In this document: in pieces, positions 19,783-29,275 of the stretch
Layout of the letters: every line of letters begins with the position of its first letter
How positions within the stretch are numbered: position 1 is the stretch's first letter
Assembly: GCA_937625935.1 (NCBI GenBank)
Contig: OW569373.1
Coordinates: forward strand, 310,001 to 374,000
DNA from: Tetramitus jugosus
Lineage: Eukaryota; Protista; Heterolobosea
Length of the DNA stretch: 64,000 nt
Direction: 5' to 3'
Position numbers and translations under genes: made by a program
Notes under the pieces: generated by a model
Database searches by the model: none
Seen by the model: only the letters and a program-made list of their open reading frames with translations
What the model was told of the DNA's origin: nothing

Positions 19783-20268
19783 TTTCTCGCACTAGTGTAT
19801 AGCTTTGTTTGCTTGTTTGCTTGTTTTTGAGTTGTTTTTGTTATCAAGAGTATTGGTTTGTTTGTTATGTGTTTGTTGTGTGCTAGTTCCAATAAGAGAG
19901 TTTTTTTTGTGGTTGTGGTTGTTGGATAATGGACCACAAGGTCGGGTGACAGTTCGTTGTTTTGTCCGAAAATAAAAATTTTGTCCGACGACAGCCAGCA
20001 AATGTAGAGTGAAGTTGAATGGGCAGTAGAAGCCTGGAAAACACTCGGCTGTGAAGGATGGTTTTGGGAGCTTATTGCTTGTTTGATACTTGTGCAAAGG
20101 CAAAAAAATGCGGGTTCAGAAGGGAAGCTATTTTTCAGTTGCGTTTATGCTTTTTGTGTTGCTCTTGTTTTTTTGGATGGTTTTGTGGGACTTTAGGAAC
20201 TCCGACGCAGAAGTTGTAAAGAATAAATTTAGATTTCTGCAGGAATGTGACAGATCAAAATCAAGGAG

Positions 20269-21750
20269 TTAGTGCGTGGAGATGAAGATGGAGATGTCTG
20301 AGAAGCGTGATGAGTGAAGGAGAAGTTTGGTTTTGAAGTGATTGGCAATCTTAGTCTCTGGTGGCTCCATGGCGTAAAATATGGTGTGATGAGAACCGCA
20401 GACGACCTGTGGCTTCAAGCCCTTTTTCTTCCACTCTTCCAGTATCGGGCTTCGTATTCTCCGAGGTGAGCTCCACGTGACAGTATGCCCCAATCCTAAT
20501 TGTCCCAGGGTATTGTCACCAGCACTGTAGAATATGTTGTCTTCAGTTTGAAAAATGGTGTGTTCTGTACCACACTTGACAGACCGAATCGTTGCAGGAG
20601 GCGAAAGCTGAATCTTTGAAAACTCAAGTACCCAGGGAGTCATACTACACAACCCTAATTGACCCTTGTCGTTTGTTCCACAACAATACACTTCTTTCAA
20701 CTCGTTTGTGATCACAGTAAAATGGGCACCACAGGACGCATCGATGGCTTTACCATACTTGAAAGGTATAACCTGTGGCGTGTCTACGGACAGCTGAGAA
20801 CTATGTAGTCCCAGTTTTCCAAAGGTAGGACTCCCACAACCGAACAGGGTTCCTCTTTCCGAAAGAAAGATGGAATGCTCGATTCCACAAGCGATATGCA
20901 CAATCCTTTCATCTCGCAAAGTCAGTACCTCCTGTATTGGGTAGTACACGCGCTGGCAGTGACCTAAACCCAAGTTACCACAAGAGTTCCTACCAGACGC
21001 ATACACCTTTCTGGATTCTGTCAAGTAGAACGTATGAGAACCCATTGAGGAACAAAATATAGAGGTAACCGGTTCTTTCAACATGTTGAGATTCTTCATT
21101 GGCCGAAATTGATGAATTCTTCTGACCGAGTCTGGAAAGCCCAGCTGGCCAGCTGAATTGGATCCCGAGCACATCCATGTCATATTGGACAATAACAAAA
21201 ATGCATGCTCCTTTCCACACACAACTCTTAGCATGTTACAATCACTGTCAACTGTCACAGCAGATACAGTCATTACATTTGTTTCCTTATGTAAAAAATC
21301 TTCCATCGATATAACAGATTGATCTTCACTCACCAGTTTTCTCGAATTATCGCTATTCTCGTTCGGAATTCCCAAGTTGGAATAATCATTCTGACCACAT
21401 GCCCACAGTAAATGTGGATCTTTGGTCAAGAAGAGTGAGAATTTGGCACCACATCCTATATCCAGAACTTCTGGTTGCTTTGCTGAAAAGAATTGCTTTC
21501 GCAAAATGTCTTCCTGGTGTAACATCTGTAAAGGAAGAGGCAGAGCTTTTTGGAGGGAACTCGTGTTGAACTGAAGCGGAATAATGTGCTTTGACATGGC
21601 CGGTGCTCTCTCATACCCTACACCGAGTTCACCACATTTATTGGCTCCACATACTCCAATCCATTTATCATTCATTATTAGGGTGATATGCTTTCTACTT
21701 TTCGAGTTTGAACTTTTGATTCCCAGATCAGATTCATTCATTTTATGCAT
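20269..21750 (-). CDS. RCC1-repeat beta-propeller protein
   Basis: Repeated GxNxxGQLG and CGxxH(T/S) motifs; ends in RFSDISIFISTH. Confidence 0.9.
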   Translation of the reverse strand: MHKMNESDLGIKSSNSKSRKHITLIMNDKWIGVCGANKCGELGVGYERAPAMSKHIIPLQFNTSSLQKALPLPLQMLHQEDILRKQFFSAKQPEVLDIGCGAKFSLFLTKDPHLLWACGQNDYSNLGIPNENSDNSRKLVSEDQSVISMEDFLHKETNVMTVSAVTVDSDCNMLRVVCGKEHAFLLLSNMTWMCSGSNSAGQLGFPDSVRRIHQFRPMKNLNMLKEPVTSIFCSSMGSHTFYLTESRKVYASGRNSCGNLGLGHCQRVYYPIQEVLTLRDERIVHIACGIEHSIFLSERGTLFGCGSPTFGKLGLHSSQLSVDTPQVIPFKYGKAIDASCGAHFTVITNELKEVYCCGTNDKGQLGLCSMTPWVLEFSKIQLSPPATIRSVKCGTEHTIFQTEDNIFYSAGDNTLGQLGLGHTVTWSSPRRIRSPILEEWKKKGLKPQVVCGSHHTIFYAMEPPETKIANHFKTKLLLHSSRFSDISIFISTH

Positions 21751-21798
21751 CGCTCAACGTTTCATATTCGAAGTTGAAAAGACGAGTCAACACAAAAA

Positions 21799-23211
21799 AT
21801 GTCATCAACATCACAAGAGAAGAAGGATGATGACCATGCATCGACAACTCCCCGACTCAACCAAGTACGAAACAAGAATAAAAGAAGACGAAAACCTTCA
21901 CATAATCAACCGAATAGTAGTAATGGTCAAATAAACAAGAACAATTCTGCATTTCATCGGAGGAACAAGAGATTACAAAAAGATGATCAAAAGAGAGTAG
22001 TGGACAAGAGAGAGGGAACAAAGAGACGAAAATTTGAAGTCTTTCCGATACTTGAGCTCGCCACCGATGTTCAAATTGAAATTTTAACATTCTTGTCCAT
22101 ACGTCATCGAATGGATTGCGTCCGTCAATGCAGCAAATATTTTTACGCGTTGGTGGAATCGTCGGTGCAGTGTGTGGGACATGCTGTTGGTTTTAATCAA
22201 AAAGCGACAGAAGATTATGTTTACATGCGATTGGATCAGATTAGTAATTTGCTTCGTCACGAATGGATCAAGGAACACGTTGTTTCCTTGCATTTGTCAA
22301 ACATGTTGGATCGGAGTGTTAAAAAGTTGGATTCCAAGCGAATTTTAAGTCTTGCGAGTGGTAATATACCTTTTAGTCAATTTAAGCAGTTGAAGCATTT
22401 TGTGATGACTGAAACATTCAATTTGATCGATGTTGATGTGTTGTGTGATGAGTTGCCTCGATTGGAGTACTTTCAAGTTCCAAGATTGTTCTCTGAATTG
22501 AGTCGAGATAAAATTGTTCCGAACAATAGTGTCAAGGCACTTGTCTTGACAGCTCAGTCGATAGACATCCATTTAGTCGACTATATCAGACACAAGTTTT
22601 CTAATCTTGAGTATTTAGAGTTGGAGAGTGGATCGAATCAAAACATTGAGGAAGCAAGCATCACTTTGTTTTCGACACAGTACCCTAGCCCTCCGATTCC
22701 ACGCATTACTCTCAATTCTCGTATTGTGCAATCAACGTCGTGGCTAACAAAATTTTGTCAGAACGGTGCTTCATGTCTTGTAGAGCTCAATTTGAAAAAT
22801 ATAGGTCACAGCGACATGGATGACATACGGCCATTGCTTCATATGGCTCAAACAGGACAATTGAAGTGTGTATCATTCGGTGAATGTTCCGAGCTGGATG
22901 ATTATGAGATTGAGAGATTTCTGGTGCTCGGGTGCAGTGTAAACATTCATCTCGTTTGTTTTGAGTATGGTGCTGGTGGGCAATGTCCATGTTCAGGTCG
23001 AATGATGGATGATATCTACTATGCTCTCAATCTGCGGCATGAGAGTGAGAACAAATCGTTGAGACAAGTTGCCAAACTTCGAAGCAAATATCCTGGTTTA
23101 TTTTTCGTGAGCAATGAGAAGAGTCTGGGTAATCCTGTTCACAACAAGATGAAAAACATTATGTCTCGAGTGACTGGTCATTCATGGAATCACATCCTTT
23201 GCACCCAATAA
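21799..23211 (+). CDS. F-box protein with LRR-like C-terminal region
   Basis: F-box ILELATDVQIEILTFLS..VRQCSKYFYAL; LxxL repeats (FKQLKHF, LPRLEYF, FSNLEYLEL). Confidence 0.78.
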   Translation: MSSTSQEKKDDDHASTTPRLNQVRNKNKRRRKPSHNQPNSSNGQINKNNSAFHRRNKRLQKDDQKRVVDKREGTKRRKFEVFPILELATDVQIEILTFLSIRHRMDCVRQCSKYFYALVESSVQCVGHAVGFNQKATEDYVYMRLDQISNLLRHEWIKEHVVSLHLSNMLDRSVKKLDSKRILSLASGNIPFSQFKQLKHFVMTETFNLIDVDVLCDELPRLEYFQVPRLFSELSRDKIVPNNSVKALVLTAQSIDIHLVDYIRHKFSNLEYLELESGSNQNIEEASITLFSTQYPSPPIPRITLNSRIVQSTSWLTKFCQNGASCLVELNLKNIGHSDMDDIRPLLHMAQTGQLKCVSFGECSELDDYEIERFLVLGCSVNIHLVCFEYGAGGQCPCSGRMMDDIYYALNLRHESENKSLRQVAKLRSKYPGLFFVSNEKSLGNPVHNKMKNIMSRVTGHSWNHILCTQ

Positions 23212-23285
23212 ACCAAACCTGCTGAAAGGACACCGACTTCAGCTGTCACCGATCAGAAACACAAAACCACAAAAAAACGAATCAA

Positions 23286-24887
23286 ATGGAACACGAACAA
23301 CCACTCACAACAACAGAGACAGATGGTGCCACTAGCAACAACATTCCCATCGCGCCATCTGCTCCAATTGTAGATCAACAGCCAACCGAAAAGCAATCCA
23401 TCTTCAGAGGCATCCCCTACACTCTCATTCCAAAGCACCAAGCTCAGAAAACCATCTTCAATCGGGAGAATTTTATTGCCGCCACCGACTCATTTACGGA
23501 ATCGATGGATCAATTTCCTTTTGTGAGGGATCGACTCATACAAAGCTTTTCCAAACAGGCACCACCAACGACACCTTCAGTCAACCAACAAAAGGTTGCG
23601 CGCCAAAATGCTTCTACGACCAGTCGCACACTCTTTGAACATCGACGATCAATCAACCTTCAAATTGCCCTTCGAAAATTTCAAATCAAGTATAGCTTAC
23701 AAAAGTTAGTGTTGGCATTCAAGGAAATGGACACTTCTGTGTTCAGTCATCCTGATATGATCCAAATGTTTTGTGAAACAGCGTTCACAAACGAAGAATT
23801 TGAAACTGTTGCCAACTATTTGACTGGAATCAACAATCCAACATCTGATTTGAGTATTGCAGATCAGTTTTGTATCAAATTGATACAAAATGATTTGTCA
23901 TTCCATTATCAATTAAAGTGGTTGTTGTGGAGTCGTTCGTTTGAGCTGGAATCAAGAGTCGTTGGTGTCAAGAAGGACATATCAACAGTGAAATCAGCGT
24001 GTACAGAGCTGTTATCAAGTAAAGCTTGGATTCAGTTGTTGTCCATTGTGATGGGATTGCGTCAGTATATGGTTACTGATGTTAGTCTTGCGAACAAGGG
24101 TCAAAGCAGTCGGAATCGTGCAAGTGGTTCACTGCAACATGGCTTTGAGCTCAAAACATTGAATTCTCTCAAGATGATCAAGGGAAATCAACAAAAATCA
24201 AGTTTGTTGAACGAATTGGCATACATGATCCAGTTGATGCATCCAAGATTGGTGCACGATGTTTTGTTCGAGTTGAGTACTTTGTTGAGAACAGAGAAAT
24301 TTGATTATTACTTGTTTTTGCAGCAGTGTAATGAACTGTTTCGGTTATCTCAAATCTATGAAACAGTGTTGAGAGATATGGAGAAGGACGTTGTTCATCA
24401 TCCAAAATTCTATGAATGGATGTTGGACTCCCACAACATACTATCACAGTTCGGTTCTATCGTCTCAGACATCAAGCAGGAGTTTGATAGTATGAGCTCT
24501 ATGATTCAAGAGTGCGCTGTATTGTATCATATGACTGCATTGCTCAACACCAAAGAATCCTCGGGCGGTGGACATGAGAACTATACAATCATGAACGAAT
24601 TCAAGCTCATTATTTCGTTCTTGAAAGATTTACTATCCATTTGTAGTAATATCCGGAGCACTTCAAGTCCATTGATCTTTTTACCACAATTGTATAATAT
24701 CTGTCCGAACATCCAGAACAATCGAGCTCCATTCTCTGATATTGAAATTGTATGTCGAACAGAGGAACCCAAACCAAAACGAACCATATCTCGAATGCAG
24801 TACAATATGATGAAAATGAAACAAGATAGTAATCCATTAATCGCGCAGTTACTTGAAGGAATCACAGAAGATATGTTAATAGATTAG
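23286..24887 (+). CDS. Divergent formin FH2-domain protein lacking a poly-proline FH1
   Basis: RRSINLQIAL, LSIADQF, ACTELLSS..LLSIVMGLRQYM, HGFELKTLNSLKMIKG..SLLNELA follow FH2 knob/post motifs. Confidence 0.8.
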   Translation: MEHEQPLTTTETDGATSNNIPIAPSAPIVDQQPTEKQSIFRGIPYTLIPKHQAQKTIFNRENFIAATDSFTESMDQFPFVRDRLIQSFSKQAPPTTPSVNQQKVARQNASTTSRTLFEHRRSINLQIALRKFQIKYSLQKLVLAFKEMDTSVFSHPDMIQMFCETAFTNEEFETVANYLTGINNPTSDLSIADQFCIKLIQNDLSFHYQLKWLLWSRSFELESRVVGVKKDISTVKSACTELLSSKAWIQLLSIVMGLRQYMVTDVSLANKGQSSRNRASGSLQHGFELKTLNSLKMIKGNQQKSSLLNELAYMIQLMHPRLVHDVLFELSTLLRTEKFDYYLFLQQCNELFRLSQIYETVLRDMEKDVVHHPKFYEWMLDSHNILSQFGSIVSDIKQEFDSMSSMIQECAVLYHMTALLNTKESSGGGHENYTIMNEFKLIISFLKDLLSICSNIRSTSSPLIFLPQLYNICPNIQNNRAPFSDIEIVCRTEEPKPKRTISRMQYNMMKMKQDSNPLIAQLLEGITEDMLID

Positions 24888-24950
24888 TGCGATATCCATA
24901 CATAATAGAAAACGAGCAAAGAACAAGCATATATGTTAAAAAATATATGT

Positions 24951-26021
24951 TTAGTTAAACTCCTGAACATCTTTCATAATTTGCTGTACATCAATATATC
25001 GTGAGAAAACTTTGAGGAGTTTGTCAACCTTTGCTTCATCTTCCGAATTCATCTGGAGAAGTTCATGCTTCTTGGCACTCTGATTCTCAATCATGGGATC
25101 ATTCCTGCTCATTGCAATTGACATGCATGTTTGTTTCACGCACGTCACGTCTTGATGCTCTACGAGTCCGTGCTCCATTGGTATGAAACCGTACACCTTG
25201 ATATCACTTCTCACATGCTGCGCAAAGTAAATCTCAACATCCTTCTTCCTCTGTTCGTACAAGTCTTGAGGCACCTTGTTGAATATGACACCGATTACAC
25301 GTCGACGACGACGGAAACTACCATCGTGATCCGCAATTGTCATTCTCTGCTGTTCCTGCAAATCAAAATACTCCATATACAAACAGTTCAAATTGAACAA
25401 ATCGATCGCATTGCCCAGCGAACCACTCTCAAAATTAATAATTAACAAAACAGGTGCACTCAGCTCGTGAGCCACTCTCGCATTCGAACAACCAATGACA
25501 CTACCCACACTGGCATAACCAATTCCATCCACAATCACCCATTCACTCCTCAATGCCTCCACACTCTCCACCACCTTCTTTATTCTACTATTCTCCGATT
25601 CTCTGACCATATCGATCGACGGCATGAGTTCTGGGCTCTGTTCACGCTGCACTTCCGACGTATAACCATTGTAGTAAATGATGGGACCCATTCCAGTGAA
25701 TGGCAGCTTATGAGAGTAACAGTACTTCCAAACAGGTTGTGTATCGATGCATTGTGTGCAAGGTTTAATGTAACCAATGGGAGCTACTAGATTTTTCTTG
25801 TCATCGACTTCTGGTTGCACTTCTTGTTGTTCTTGTTGTTGTCTTTGCAGTAGCACTTGATCTCGGATCATGGCAATGAGGGAGAGGCAAATGGAAGATT
25901 TTCCACAGTGACTCTTGTCACCTGCAATAAACAATCGCAGTTGGTTCATGATGTTGGGATGTTGTTGATCAAAGTCTTCTTGTTTTTGTTGTTGTTCGTT
26001 GATCTCGGCTTTGAGCTTCAT
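24951..26021 (-). CDS. BioD/CobQ/Pta-N-terminal-like P-loop NTPase (AAA_26-like)
   Basis: IAGDKSHCGKSS, IGYIKP, VIVDGIG..SVGS..SNARVA, GVIFNKV; first ATG at 26021. Confidence 0.75.
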   Translation of the reverse strand: MKLKAEINEQQQKQEDFDQQHPNIMNQLRLFIAGDKSHCGKSSICLSLIAMIRDQVLLQRQQQEQQEVQPEVDDKKNLVAPIGYIKPCTQCIDTQPVWKYCYSHKLPFTGMGPIIYYNGYTSEVQREQSPELMPSIDMVRESENSRIKKVVESVEALRSEWVIVDGIGYASVGSVIGCSNARVAHELSAPVLLIINFESGSLGNAIDLFNLNCLYMEYFDLQEQQRMTIADHDGSFRRRRRVIGVIFNKVPQDLYEQRKKDVEIYFAQHVRSDIKVYGFIPMEHGLVEHQDVTCVKQTCMSIAMSRNDPMIENQSAKKHELLQMNSEDEAKVDKLLKVFSRYIDVQQIMKDVQEFN

Positions 26022-26109
26022 TTTCACCGCCAAATTCTAAAGCCAATTTTGTTCGACGTTTTTCGGAGTTTTTCGGAGAAGAAATAAACAAAACTCAAAC
26101 AGATTGAGA

Positions 26110-27135
26110 ATGCTGCAGTTGCAATTGGGTGCCAAAGTCAAGACGATATCAAAGCGTTTCTTTTCATGCACATGCATGCCTCGTGACAGTAATCAAGAAG
26201 AGAGCTTCAATCCACACAATCCAAATCCCATCTTCTCCGCTGGGACAGTTTCTCCGTTTACTCCGGTCCCCGATCATATTGTAAAGCCAAAGTATTACAC
26301 GACGGGACAAGCCAAATTTCATAACAAGATTCAATTGGTCAAGACTGAGGAAGAAGTTGTTGCTATGCGTGAGGTCTGTGCTCTCGCAAGAAAAACACTC
26401 AACTATGCAAGGAGTCTGGTGCGTGTCGGCATAACGACAGATGAAATTGATAGAGCTGTGTTTGAGTTTGTTGTGAGTCACAATGCCTTTCCATCGACTC
26501 TCAACTATAACCATTTCCCCAAGAGTGTGTGCACAAGTGTGAACAATGTTATCGTTCATGGCATACCGGATGATCGAGCCCTGATGAACGGTGATATCAT
26601 TAACATTGATGTGACAGTGTATCTCAATGGCTATCACGGTGATTGCAATGAGACGATATTTGTTGGTGAGGGTCATACGGAGCAAGTGAAACAATTCGTT
26701 GAAGTCACGCGACAGTCTCTGTACAATGCGATTCAAGTGTGTGGTCCTGGTGTCTACATCAATAAGATTGGAGAAACGATTGAGAATACGGTGAAACCTT
26801 TTGGGTATGCTATTTTGGAGGAGTTTACAGGTCATGGAGTTGGCAAGCATTTCCACAGCTATCCTACTGTGAATCATTACAAGACAAAACGGATTGAGGC
26901 AGGTCCGATTCAGATGTTTAAGCCTGGTATGACATTCACGATTGAACCAGTGATAAACATGTCAAGCAAGAGGTGGCGCATGTGGAAGGATAAGTGGACT
27001 ATTGTGACAGCGAATGGAGACATGTCCGCCACTTGGGAACACACACTGATGATTACCGAAGAGGGAGTCGAGGTTCTAACGGCGAATGAAGGAGAACAAC
27101 GATTCTACACACTTGAACACAACGTCAACAATTAA
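26110..27135 (+). CDS. METAP1D: Methionine aminopeptidase type I, mitochondrial (MAP1D-like)
   Basis: FPKSVCTSVN, HGIPD, DIINIDVT, GYHGD, GHGVG, FTIEP, EHT; basic presequence. Confidence 0.93.
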   Translation: MLQLQLGAKVKTISKRFFSCTCMPRDSNQEESFNPHNPNPIFSAGTVSPFTPVPDHIVKPKYYTTGQAKFHNKIQLVKTEEEVVAMREVCALARKTLNYARSLVRVGITTDEIDRAVFEFVVSHNAFPSTLNYNHFPKSVCTSVNNVIVHGIPDDRALMNGDIINIDVTVYLNGYHGDCNETIFVGEGHTEQVKQFVEVTRQSLYNAIQVCGPGVYINKIGETIENTVKPFGYAILEEFTGHGVGKHFHSYPTVNHYKTKRIEAGPIQMFKPGMTFTIEPVINMSSKRWRMWKDKWTIVTANGDMSATWEHTLMITEEGVEVLTANEGEQRFYTLEHNVNN

Positions 27136-27211
27136 GTAAACAAGTAGAGCGCTCTAAAAAGCAAGACCATTTTCGTTCGTGGTGCAATGCCGACGTTGCC
27201 TATGATGTATT

Positions 27212-28111
27212 CTAACCTTTGTGACATTCGATAGCTATATCAGTCAAGTGACCCATTCGGGAGGCTTCATACAATTTAAGAAAATGTGCTCCCCAACAAG
27301 GGGTGGAGTCAGAGACAGAAGGAAATCGTTTCCACTAGAGCCCGTTCTGTGGTTGAAATATGGAAGCAAAACTAGGTGCAATAAGGACATGAGAGTTGAG
27401 CATTGTCCAGTGCAAGGTCAAGCAATCCAGGATACAAAATAAAAGTTCTGTTGTCAGATCCCTTCAAGACAAATATCTTAACCGCGAATAACAACTCTTT
27501 GACAAGGGGAATCTGCCGAAAGGGAGGGTGATTGCCCAGTGGTTGTAACTTTCTGCCCACCATTCCTTTTCCTGCTCAAGTCGAAAGTCGAAAATTCCTA
27601 CCACCATATCAACAACTTTTCCGCAACTTAAGTGAACCATAGTAGCATTAGATCGAGCATCCGGGTGAGAAACCGAATGAAATTTGATCCATGTTTTGGA
27701 AGTATGTCGTATCGATGCAGATCATTCGTTGGTTTACCAGGGAAACCACCAAACGTAAACAAACATGTTGTCCTCCGCAATAAGCATCATCAGTACTCAA
27801 TGGTTCGGTTGCCGCACAATACTCTAGACTCGGATAATCTCCTCCTTGTTGAGAATCTTGTGGAACGGTTGAGTCAACTCCTTTCTCAAAGGATCACACA
27901 CCCTTAGAGCCTGTTCTGGAGTGAAAAAGGAAATATCAGATCCTCCATACCAATACGCTTTTCCTCCACCAGATACGATTGTGTGATTGAATCTGAGGTT
28001 TTAAAACATAAGAATACATCTGTATACTATCATCCATAGCTCATCTCATGACTTGCGCAACATCATTGCTCCATCACTCCTTCCACTCCATACTCTCCAC
28101 ATCCAACTCAT
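27212..28111 (-). pseudogene. Kelch-repeat pseudogene with several frameshifts and stops
   Basis: Minus-strand fragments in shifting frames: RFNHTIVSGGGKAYWYGG, LFTFGGFPGKPTNDLHRYD, SKTWIKF..PDARSNATMV, YGGRN, KVTTTG; ends HFLKLYEASRMGHLTDIAIECHKG*. Confidence 0.72.
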
Positions 28112-28126
28112 TGACGAATTTTTGGG

Positions 28127-28138
28127 TTTGGCGCCAAA
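28127..28138. promoter_or_regulatory. Palindromic E2F-like element TTTGGCGCCAAA in a divergent promoter
   Basis: Perfect 12-bp palindrome matching TTTSSCGC on both strands, between the Kelch pseudogene and the F-box-Rab gene. Confidence 0.4.
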
Positions 28139-28246
28139 ATGGCCTCTACTTAAAATGTTTGTAAGAAAAAAGTAATTCGAGTTGGAACGAATTCTTGAGT
28201 TCCTTCCCCTCACAAAACCAGCCAAACAAAAAAACCATAATCGAAC

Positions 28247-29275
28247 ATGACTGTCGCAGCACTGAGCTGGGATGAGCTCTCCCAGGTTCTGCTCTTTCTC
28301 CCAGCGTCCGACGTGTGTCACTATTCGCAGACCAATTCCACTGCATATGACTGTATCCTATCCAACCAAGACTTGTGGTCAGTGCTCCTGCAGAGAGACT
28401 TTGCTTCCATAATTGAACAATTGAAGCAACCACAAACAGCAGCTATGCAGAGTATCGCTGCAGCCAGCAACATGGTGGTGGATCAAGCCTGTTGTGACGA
28501 AATGAAGAATTACGTGTGCTACTACGTGCGATTTTACCAATTTCCGTTCGATCGAGTCGAAGCCAGGTCCATGTACGATGAAATGAGCAATCACACGATT
28601 TCCAAGGTTTTATTCGGTGTGGCATCCAGTCCATTGAATCTGTTGGTGATGAACACTTTGAAAAACGGACAACTCGATAAACCACAGAATGGAAACTATC
28701 CCGTGATCGGTATCGATTTCATGCTGGCGTGTATGGCTTCGAGACAGCCAAAGGTGACTCCAAACTTTACAATTCAACTTTGGCAGATTGGTCCAACACC
28801 AGAGAGATTTCGAACTATTTCAAGGGCCTACTATCGTGGTGCTCAATGCATGGTGATCACAGTAGACACTCAACATGCATGGGAAGAAGATTATTCTACC
28901 GATCATCCATACAGTTCTTACGGTCCGAATTCTTTGTCGAGAGCTCTGGCAGCACTTAAAGAGAGTCAACCAGCTTTACATCTTGTGCCACCAAGGCCTT
29001 GCAAAGGTGTGTTGATTGTTGGTGTCGGTGTTTGGTCAGAAGAAGCACCCATTTCAAAACAGAGATTCCTCAATGATTGTGCTCGAGTGTTTGATATTTT
29101 GCCTTTGGAGTACTTTGAGTTGACCGGCGATAATGCCCCAGTAATGTCAGATATTATAATGAGACGTTTTTATGCATTCCATCAACAGGCTGCTCTGGAA
29201 GATCCAGAAATGGTTTCCACTCAACCGAGAGCACAACAAGAAGCGCCTCCACAATCGAGATGCATCTTAAGCTGA
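28247..29275 (+). CDS. F-box fused to a degenerate Rab-like domain with C-terminal CAAX (CILS)
   Basis: F-box LSWDELSQVLLFLPASDV..DLWSVLLQRDF; Rab motifs IGIDF, IQLW, ERFRTISRAYYRGA; no GxxxxGK, DxxG or NKxD. Confidence 0.85.
   Translation: MTVAALSWDELSQVLLFLPASDVCHYSQTNSTAYDCILSNQDLWSVLLQRDFASIIEQLKQPQTAAMQSIAAASNMVVDQACCDEMKNYVCYYVRFYQFPFDRVEARSMYDEMSNHTISKVLFGVASSPLNLLVMNTLKNGQLDKPQNGNYPVIGIDFMLACMASRQPKVTPNFTIQLWQIGPTPERFRTISRAYYRGAQCMVITVDTQHAWEEDYSTDHPYSSYGPNSLSRALAALKESQPALHLVPPRPCKGVLIVGVGVWSEEAPISKQRFLNDCARVFDILPLEYFELTGDNAPVMSDIIMRRFYAFHQQAALEDPEMVSTQPRAQQEAPPQSRCILS

Follow-up and report, generated by a model that had tools for sequence, protein, structure and literature searches.

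The window analysed here, a stretch of 64,000 nucleotides from the heterolobosean Tetramitus jugosus (contig OW569373.1, positions 310,001 to 374,000), contains an intact gene for an RCC1 propeller protein, a divergent formin gene, and a decayed copy of a Kelch gene. In the initial annotation, these three genes were credited with one and the same orphan peptide, an amphipathic helix and strand resembling the beginning of a BTB/POZ domain. All three peptides are indeed present in the sequence, but they do not form one group. The ends of the RCC1 protein and of the Kelch relic are identified as members of a genome-wide family of C-terminal modules, referred to here as tails, whereas the peptide of the formin is best read as a chance match. 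The observation is partly confirmed, and its interpretation as a BTB stub is partly supported. The coordinates of all features are given in Table 1.

Table 1. Features of the window that bear on the C-terminal tails (positions count from the first nucleotide of the window).
Feature	Position	Strand	Remarks
Spacer of 486 nt between the RCC1 stop and the ATG of the next gene	19783..20268	-	Without recognisable BTB remainder
Intact RCC1 propeller gene, 493 residues	20269..21750	-	Open reading frame; Pfam RCC1-like domain; AlphaFold2
RCC1 tail, residues 462-493	20272..20367	-	Linker, helix 468-478, RFSDISIF, five further residues, stop
FSDISI, B1-like strand motif of the RCC1 tail	20287..20304	-	D in the column of BTB strand B1 in the alignment
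FSDIEIVC (as PFSDIEIVC) in formin gene 23286-24887	24732..24755	+	Between FH2 and DAD-like C-terminus; judged chance
Decayed Kelch copy (pseudogene)	27212..28250 (about)	-	Several stops and frame changes; intact members of the small family all tailed
Relic tail HFLKLYEASRMGHLTDIAIECHKG, still open	27215..27286	-	Stop TAG at 27212-27214; profile matches

The RCC1 protein of the window contains an RCC1-like domain (PF25390/PF00415) that scores 213 bits, above the Pfam cut-off, and AlphaFold2 predicts a seven-bladed RCC1-like fold that ends at residue 461, with a predicted local distance difference test score (pLDDT) above 90 over most of the propeller. The C-terminal sequence reads ..HFKTKLLLHSSRFSDISIFISTH and is followed by a TAA stop codon; a Logan contig that is 97% identical and colinear with the gene has the same end. 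The tail has the position and the strand motif of the family described below, with the helix two residues closer to the strand. This shorter spacing explains its weak score of 3.6 bits, the second-best in the window, against a profile derived from 35 tails outside the window.

The tail of the Kelch relic scores 22.5 bits against the same profile, by far the top match in the window, and is recovered at an E value of 6.9e-5 by a Kelch-tail profile in the scan of the whole genome. A DNA search with the relic located five paralogous loci (68-78% identity). They are intact Kelch open reading frames whose main exon accounts for about 290-380 residues; a first exon of about 80 residues and one short intron precede it, and all of these proteins end in a tail, e.g., ..KLYETSLHRHLCDITIECQS. 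Two models of the KLHDC2/LZTR1 type, PF24681 (93 bits) and PF24981 (63 bits), match an intact single-exon paralogue (L063) above cut-off and identify it as a Kelch propeller. Among the members of the family, which are 34-38% identical to L063, the first member, four residues of the tail (L, H, D, and I) do not vary.

The case of the formin is different. The gene encodes an FH2 domain (Pfam, 93 bits, above cut-off, residues 78-414), and its BTB-like motif is internal, with 45 residues after it and without the K-L-[YFL] helix. It is matched neither by the two tail profiles nor by the profile of 35 tails, and its score of 7.3 bits against a BTB profile is due to an eight-residue match alone. Two occurrences of the general motif [FLM][CST]D[IVLM]x[IVF] were counted in the 47 long open reading frames of the window, with 1.39 +/- 1.13 expected from shuffling, so that its presence anywhere in a reading frame is at chance level. 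If the count is restricted to the final 16 residues of a long open reading frame, only 0.033 occurrences are expected per window, and the RCC1 protein has one.

The extent of the tail family became apparent in scans of the whole genome (26.35 Mb, 56 contigs, intron-poor) in six frames. Tails were defined by a helix with the signature [K/R]-L-[Y/F/L], a fixed spacing, the strand motif [L/F][C/S]D[I/V]x[I/V], and a stop codon 0-9 residues later. A profile of 31 positions built from six Kelch tails (A2) found 16 matches, including further Kelch members such as L063, the relic of the window, and RCC1 proteins that end in ..KLLAAQQRGKLCDITVVW and similar sequences. A second profile, built from five RCC1 tails (A4), found 35 matches, about 20 of which lie directly downstream of small RCC1 open reading frames (400-500 residues). 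Each profile recognises the family of the other, at E values of 5e-4 to 0.1 (A4 on Kelch tails) and of 0.05 to 3, and neither finds any of the 82 Pfam BTB matches of the genome.

In total, the family has at least 38 members besides fragments: RCC1 proteins with a single propeller (about 27), intact Kelch proteins (10), and a TPR protein; the count is a lower bound, as the scans score first-look candidates only. The peptide is neither orphan nor limited to three proteins, as had been assumed, but its portability holds, because it ends RCC1, Kelch, and TPR proteins alike. The carriers that were read include three divergent RCC1-like proteins and the TPR protein (L083; G000:C26:432300-433900), which has 469 residues, ends in ..KMLNQSFQGRFVDLTVVTVE, and is the only carrier seen that is not a propeller. 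Among 28 matches read individually, 26 end 0-9 residues before a stop codon; the two exceptions are a fragment without the strand and a weak match (E 0.3) that is followed by 19 residues. Every inspected match with a tail core is C-terminal, in support of the initial annotation.

Across their core, the 35 tails of the profile can be aligned free of gaps, and the spacing is constant over three types of scaffold. A tail comprises about 22 residues and consists of an amphipathic helix ([K/R]-L-[Y/F/L]..Q..), a turn, and the strand; the residues between the strand and the stop codon are often acidic, and those at the extreme end are not conserved.

The initial annotation had noted that the rest of the BTB domain is absent and had asked whether spliced transcripts continue into it. 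Pfam BTB models have no match in the RCC1 protein, the Kelch relic, the formin, the bare tails, or six other tailed proteins; all 82 matches of the genome-wide scan are outside the window, and none coincides with a tail. When 1-1.5 kb of sequence downstream from each of 13 tailed genes was scanned in three frames with a profile from the genome's own BTB domains, no BTB core was found (best score, 3.9 bits), and in one case (L053), the ATG of the next gene follows about 65 nucleotides after the stop codon. Several contigs in public "metagenome" data are 94-100% identical to this genome (L072, L080, L082, and L115-L117 from JGI dataset 3300026424; L118 and L119). Some of them, from this and related datasets, lack introns of the genome and resemble complementary DNA (cDNA): L072 and L080 are without the intron of 65-70 nucleotides of the Kelch genes, and L116 is without the intron of an RCC1 gene. 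They can therefore be regarded as transcript-derived and serve as evidence of expression. In L072 and L080, the tail and the stop codon right after it are retained, and the contigs continue colinearly with the genome; L117 contains a complete open reading frame of 451 residues with the tail at its end. In L116, which represents an RCC1 paralogue (L033; G000:C7:605747-605821) of a related strain, the stop codon after the tail is lost, 17 residues are added, and a Cys of the tail is replaced by Tyr. The tail is present in contigs derived from spliced mRNA, and there is no BTB remainder behind any copy that was checked. A hidden downstream BTB exon was rejected on the grounds of the genome-wide Pfam scan, the scan behind the 13 genes, and the spliced cDNA contigs.

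It would also be conceivable that the tails are neutral relics, left over from truncated BTB genes, or artefacts of annotation caused by an unseen further exon. This is in line with the decay of the Kelch copy in the window and with the unusually long spacer behind the RCC1 gene of the window, where the best score against the genome's own BTB profile (3.6 bits, E about 1.3) is obtained in frame directly after the RCC1 stop. This faint stretch might be a decayed BTB remainder or nothing at all. The length of the spacer is unusual for this compact genome, and a related strain has indels there. For the family, however, the neutral reading is largely refuted, and we consider it very improbable. 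Besides the missing BTB core downstream and the spliced cDNA contigs, all of which keep the tail and most of which keep the stop codon, the evidence against it comes from sequence conservation. Among 18 RCC1 paralogues, the ratio of nonsynonymous to synonymous differences per site (pN/pS) is 0.29 in the 16-codon core of the tail, whereas the adjacent last blade has 0.64 and the linker 0.60; synonymous sites are close to saturated (pS about 0.67). These ratios show what is evidently purifying selection on the tail core, stronger than on the neighbouring propeller blade.

Conservation extends to another assembly. With the profile of the Kelch family, an exhaustive HMMER search that covered 1.84 billion representatives returned only strain variants and a single distinct homologue (P0244; assembly GCA_037189345.1), which is 34% identical overall and likewise has the tail at its end (..PRKLHSMAQQRLMCDIVIDFSA). 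The locus L073 of this assembly (JBBCKJ010104578.1) is the sole Kelch-family homologue that clearly stems from a different genome. No further relatives came up in word-based protein searches, for which a Kelch member and an RCC1 tail region served as queries.

The resemblance to the first helix and strand of BTB domains, on which the initial annotation was based, is corroborated by several comparisons. In the nomenclature of the long-form BTB/POZ domain (Stogios et al. 2005, PMC1257465), the tail corresponds to helix alpha1 and the core strand B1. An hhalign comparison of the tails with an alignment of 24 BTB domains of this genome places them in the alpha1-B1 register with a P value of 1.1e-3. 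The genome's own BTB profile aligns 21 of 23 tails to its N-terminal positions (up to 36), with a median of 4.1 bits compared to 2.0 bits for the 99th percentile of 128 control C-termini. The tails share the alpha1-B1 pattern of PF00651 in the right register, down to the conserved Asp with which B1 begins. They fall short of the domain itself: the Pfam gathering score for PF00651 (20.5 bits) is not reached, and the complete core (B1-B3 and A1-A5, about 95 residues) is absent, with the stop codon 0-9 residues after B1 in all inspected matches with a tail core. Long-form BTB domains comprise 95-120 residues compared to about 22 in the tail, and unlike them, the tails are always C-terminal, keep the same spacing, and resemble one another more than they resemble the true BTB domains of the genome.

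The junctions of real propeller-BTB proteins point to the source of the element. The last 43 residues of the RCC1 protein of the window are colinear with the junction between the RCC1 and BTB domains of an RCC1-BTB-BTB protein of the same genome (L079), up to its SDVSL strand (BLASTP, E 0.005), and the Kelch-BTB junctions of LZTR1-like proteins in the genome have the same layout as the tails. RCBTB1/2, IBTK, and LZTR1 are propeller-BTB receptors of Cullin-3. In these RCC1-BTB (RCBTB1/2, IBTK) and Kelch-BTB-BTB (LZTR1) proteins, the elements follow each other in the same order: the last strand of the propeller, a short linker, a helix, and a strand with the pattern h-[C/S]-D-h-x-h. Tailed proteins, by contrast, stop in the B1-B2 hairpin and lack B2, B3, A1-A5, the Cullin-3-binding surface, and BACK. 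Taken together, the tail probably descends from a BTB domain.

Other ancestors were considered. ZnF-UBP-BTB proteins with the strand LCDVRFVW lack an RCC1 domain and do not qualify as ancestors of the RCC1 tails. As to a direct origin of the Kelch family in the LZTR1-like genes of the genome, the similarity found is limited to the level of the repeats. A BC box or PIP box is not a suitable reading of the tail either; on inspection of the alignment of 35 tails, no register fits, and the helix of the SOCS/BC box ([STP]-L-x3-[CSA]-x3-[AILV]) is not found in any register.

Alternatively, the tail might be an independent C-terminal motif, possibly a signal for targeting or turnover, that resembles alpha1-B1 by convergence. 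Its strictly C-terminal location in every inspected case with a tail core, the fact that no true BTB N-terminus is as similar to the tails as they are to one another, and the modest statistics of the BTB comparisons would agree with such an origin. We nevertheless regard it as rather improbable, because real junctions of RCC1-BTB and Kelch-BTB proteins in the same genome are colinear with the tail and because the tail does not fit the BC-box consensus. Moreover, the lack of conservation in the final residues speaks against a signal located at the C-terminal end.

Structure predictions indicate that the tail is not an integral part of the propeller. The alignments of the family were derived from the open reading frames of the main exon, and the single-exon L063 was used as the folding target. 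In the AlphaFold2 model of this Kelch protein, the propeller is closed without the tail, and residues 332-362 (pLDDT about 35) form a short helix and a strand of three residues. In the RCC1 protein of the window, the helix of the tail is predicted with a pLDDT of about 53 that falls to 39, and FSDISIF is unstructured and not docked on the propeller. The sequences of the RCC1 family agree with this picture, because the ring is already closed by an N-terminal strand together with the last HTLLY strand. A function of the tail as the closing strand of the propeller was rejected on the grounds of both models; the tail looks instead like an element that needs a partner.

Long-form BTB domains dimerize with helix alpha1 as a main contact (PMC1257465), which raises the possibility that the tails pair with each other. 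Helix-helix contacts and a two-stranded sheet could give rise to dimers or mixed oligomers, or the tail could gate its own propeller, in either case without involvement of a BTB partner or a ubiquitin ligase. The fixed spacing and the similarity across families would fit a common geometry of pairing, and no partner BTB was found among the 40 matches inspected (see below). AlphaFold2, however, does not fold the tail back onto the propeller, and we consider self-association or autoregulation an unlikely function.

The initial annotation had also proposed that the peptide is accommodated in trans by a shared BTB core, and suggested a search for BTB proteins without their own N-terminal element. 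No core of this kind was found among 40 BTB matches inspected, consisting of the 30 best and 10 whose match starts at model position 19 or later; all of them have B1. In many true BTB domains (L010, L015, L019, L020, L025, L094, and others), the B1-B2 hairpin is extended by low-complexity inserts of 15-60 residues, which explains why their Pfam matches start only at about position 20. This hairpin, in which the tailed proteins stop, is apparently a tolerated break or hinge point in the BTB domains of this organism.

If a BTB-fold partner received alpha1-B1 in trans from the tail, whether as the complement of a deficient core or through 3D domain swapping, the RCC1, Kelch, and TPR proteins would be exchangeable Cullin-3 receptors. 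The likeness to alpha1-B1 and the unfolded state of the isolated tail in AlphaFold2 are consistent with this scenario, as are the three scaffold types, which act as substrate receptors elsewhere, and the long B1-B2 inserts, which could provide the hinge loops of a swap. Receptors of Cullin-3 include RCC1-BTB proteins, for example IBTK. However, each of the 40 inspected BTB matches keeps its own B1 and no N-terminally truncated core turned up, the tail profiles match no true BTB, and the contacts with Cullin-3 lie elsewhere in the BTB domain; the region that comprises the Cullin-3-binding surface and the 3-box is absent from tailed proteins. Nothing in the analysis supports a link between tail and Cullin-3, and the proposal of a split adaptor is doubtful. 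It remains equally speculative to regard the tail as a new adaptor box, i.e., the donor half of a BTB fold that would plug into BTB-fold partners via the long B1-B2 hinge loops, so that a single ligase or assembly platform would be served by about 40 interchangeable receptors with RCC1, Kelch, or TPR scaffolds. In 3D domain swapping and donor-strand complementation, a helix-strand piece likewise completes or exchanges into the fold of another chain, a parallel that is purely hypothetical in the present case.

The explanation that we prefer, with a probability of roughly 55%, is that of a lineage-specific C-terminal module of about 22 residues that is derived from propeller-BTB junctions and acts as a partner-dependent docking or assembly handle. 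It would have originated at the junction of RCBTB/IBTK-like and LZTR1-like proteins by a cut in the B1-B2 hairpin that left helix alpha1 and the first core strand B1 of a long-form BTB domain. Presumably unable to fold alone and not packed on its own propeller, the tail would most likely fold upon binding of a partner, which may be a BTB-fold protein, another tail, or something else. As a shared handle, it could couple many substrate-binding scaffolds to one machinery in the fashion of F-boxes and SOCS boxes.

F-boxes dock on Skp1 and SOCS/BC boxes on Elongin C; KLHDC2/3/10 combine a Kelch propeller with a C-terminal BC/Cul2 box. The logic is alike, with one short box on many unrelated scaffolds that docks on a BTB-fold adaptor, and the Kelch family described here matches the KLHDC2-type Kelch model of Pfam. 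The sequence of the tail, however, fits neither consensus, which makes the relationship one of analogy rather than membership.

Several findings weigh against a BTB-derived handle. The BTB likeness rests on about 20 residues, on which the Pfam BTB models are silent, and a profile restricted to the N-terminal part of the BTB domain does not separate the tails from the background among the open reading frames of the window. The RCC1 tail of the window is a divergent member of the family, and the ancestor of the Kelch family is not pinned down, because the similarity to the Kelch-BTB proteins of the genome does not exceed the level of the repeats. No partner for the tail was found, and every one of the 40 BTB matches inspected has its own alpha1-B1. 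Both AlphaFold2 predictions of the tail rest on few alignment rows that bear a tail, and the loss of the stop codon in L116 indicates that the location at the very end of the protein is not absolute.

A BTB fragment that is too small to fold alone and is kept by selection on dozens of unrelated scaffolds would nonetheless carry the signature of a shared docking handle. Literature searches on partial BTB domains in connection with RCC1, Naegleria, or Heterolobosea brought up no BTB-derived docking handle of this kind. If a partner were found, the tail would represent a new way of wiring substrate receptors and a domain that can be used as two separately encoded halves. For the annotation of heterolobosean genomes, it offers a simple motif at the C-terminus by which about 40 functionally uncharacterised proteins can be grouped.

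A few observations concern individual loci. A tailed RCC1 gene and an LZTR1-like Kelch-BTB-BTB gene (L074 and L102; G000:C27:153277-157639) are arranged head to head at a distance of about 400 nucleotides, which is possibly a coincidence. Short orphan fragments of Kelch-family tails are located at L065 (G000:C42:17306-17350) and L067 (G000:C11:389228-389281); L065 shares the flank downstream of the gene L051 and is therefore a segmental copy of its 3' end. In the Logan contig L081, as compared to L052, the sequence upstream of exon 1 is joined to the middle of exon 2, with 329 nucleotides skipped; the junction could represent an alternative splice, a deletion in the strain, or a misassembly. 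The formin of the window ends in ..NPLIAQLLEGITEDMLID (24800-24884), which resembles a diaphanous autoregulatory domain (DAD) motif.

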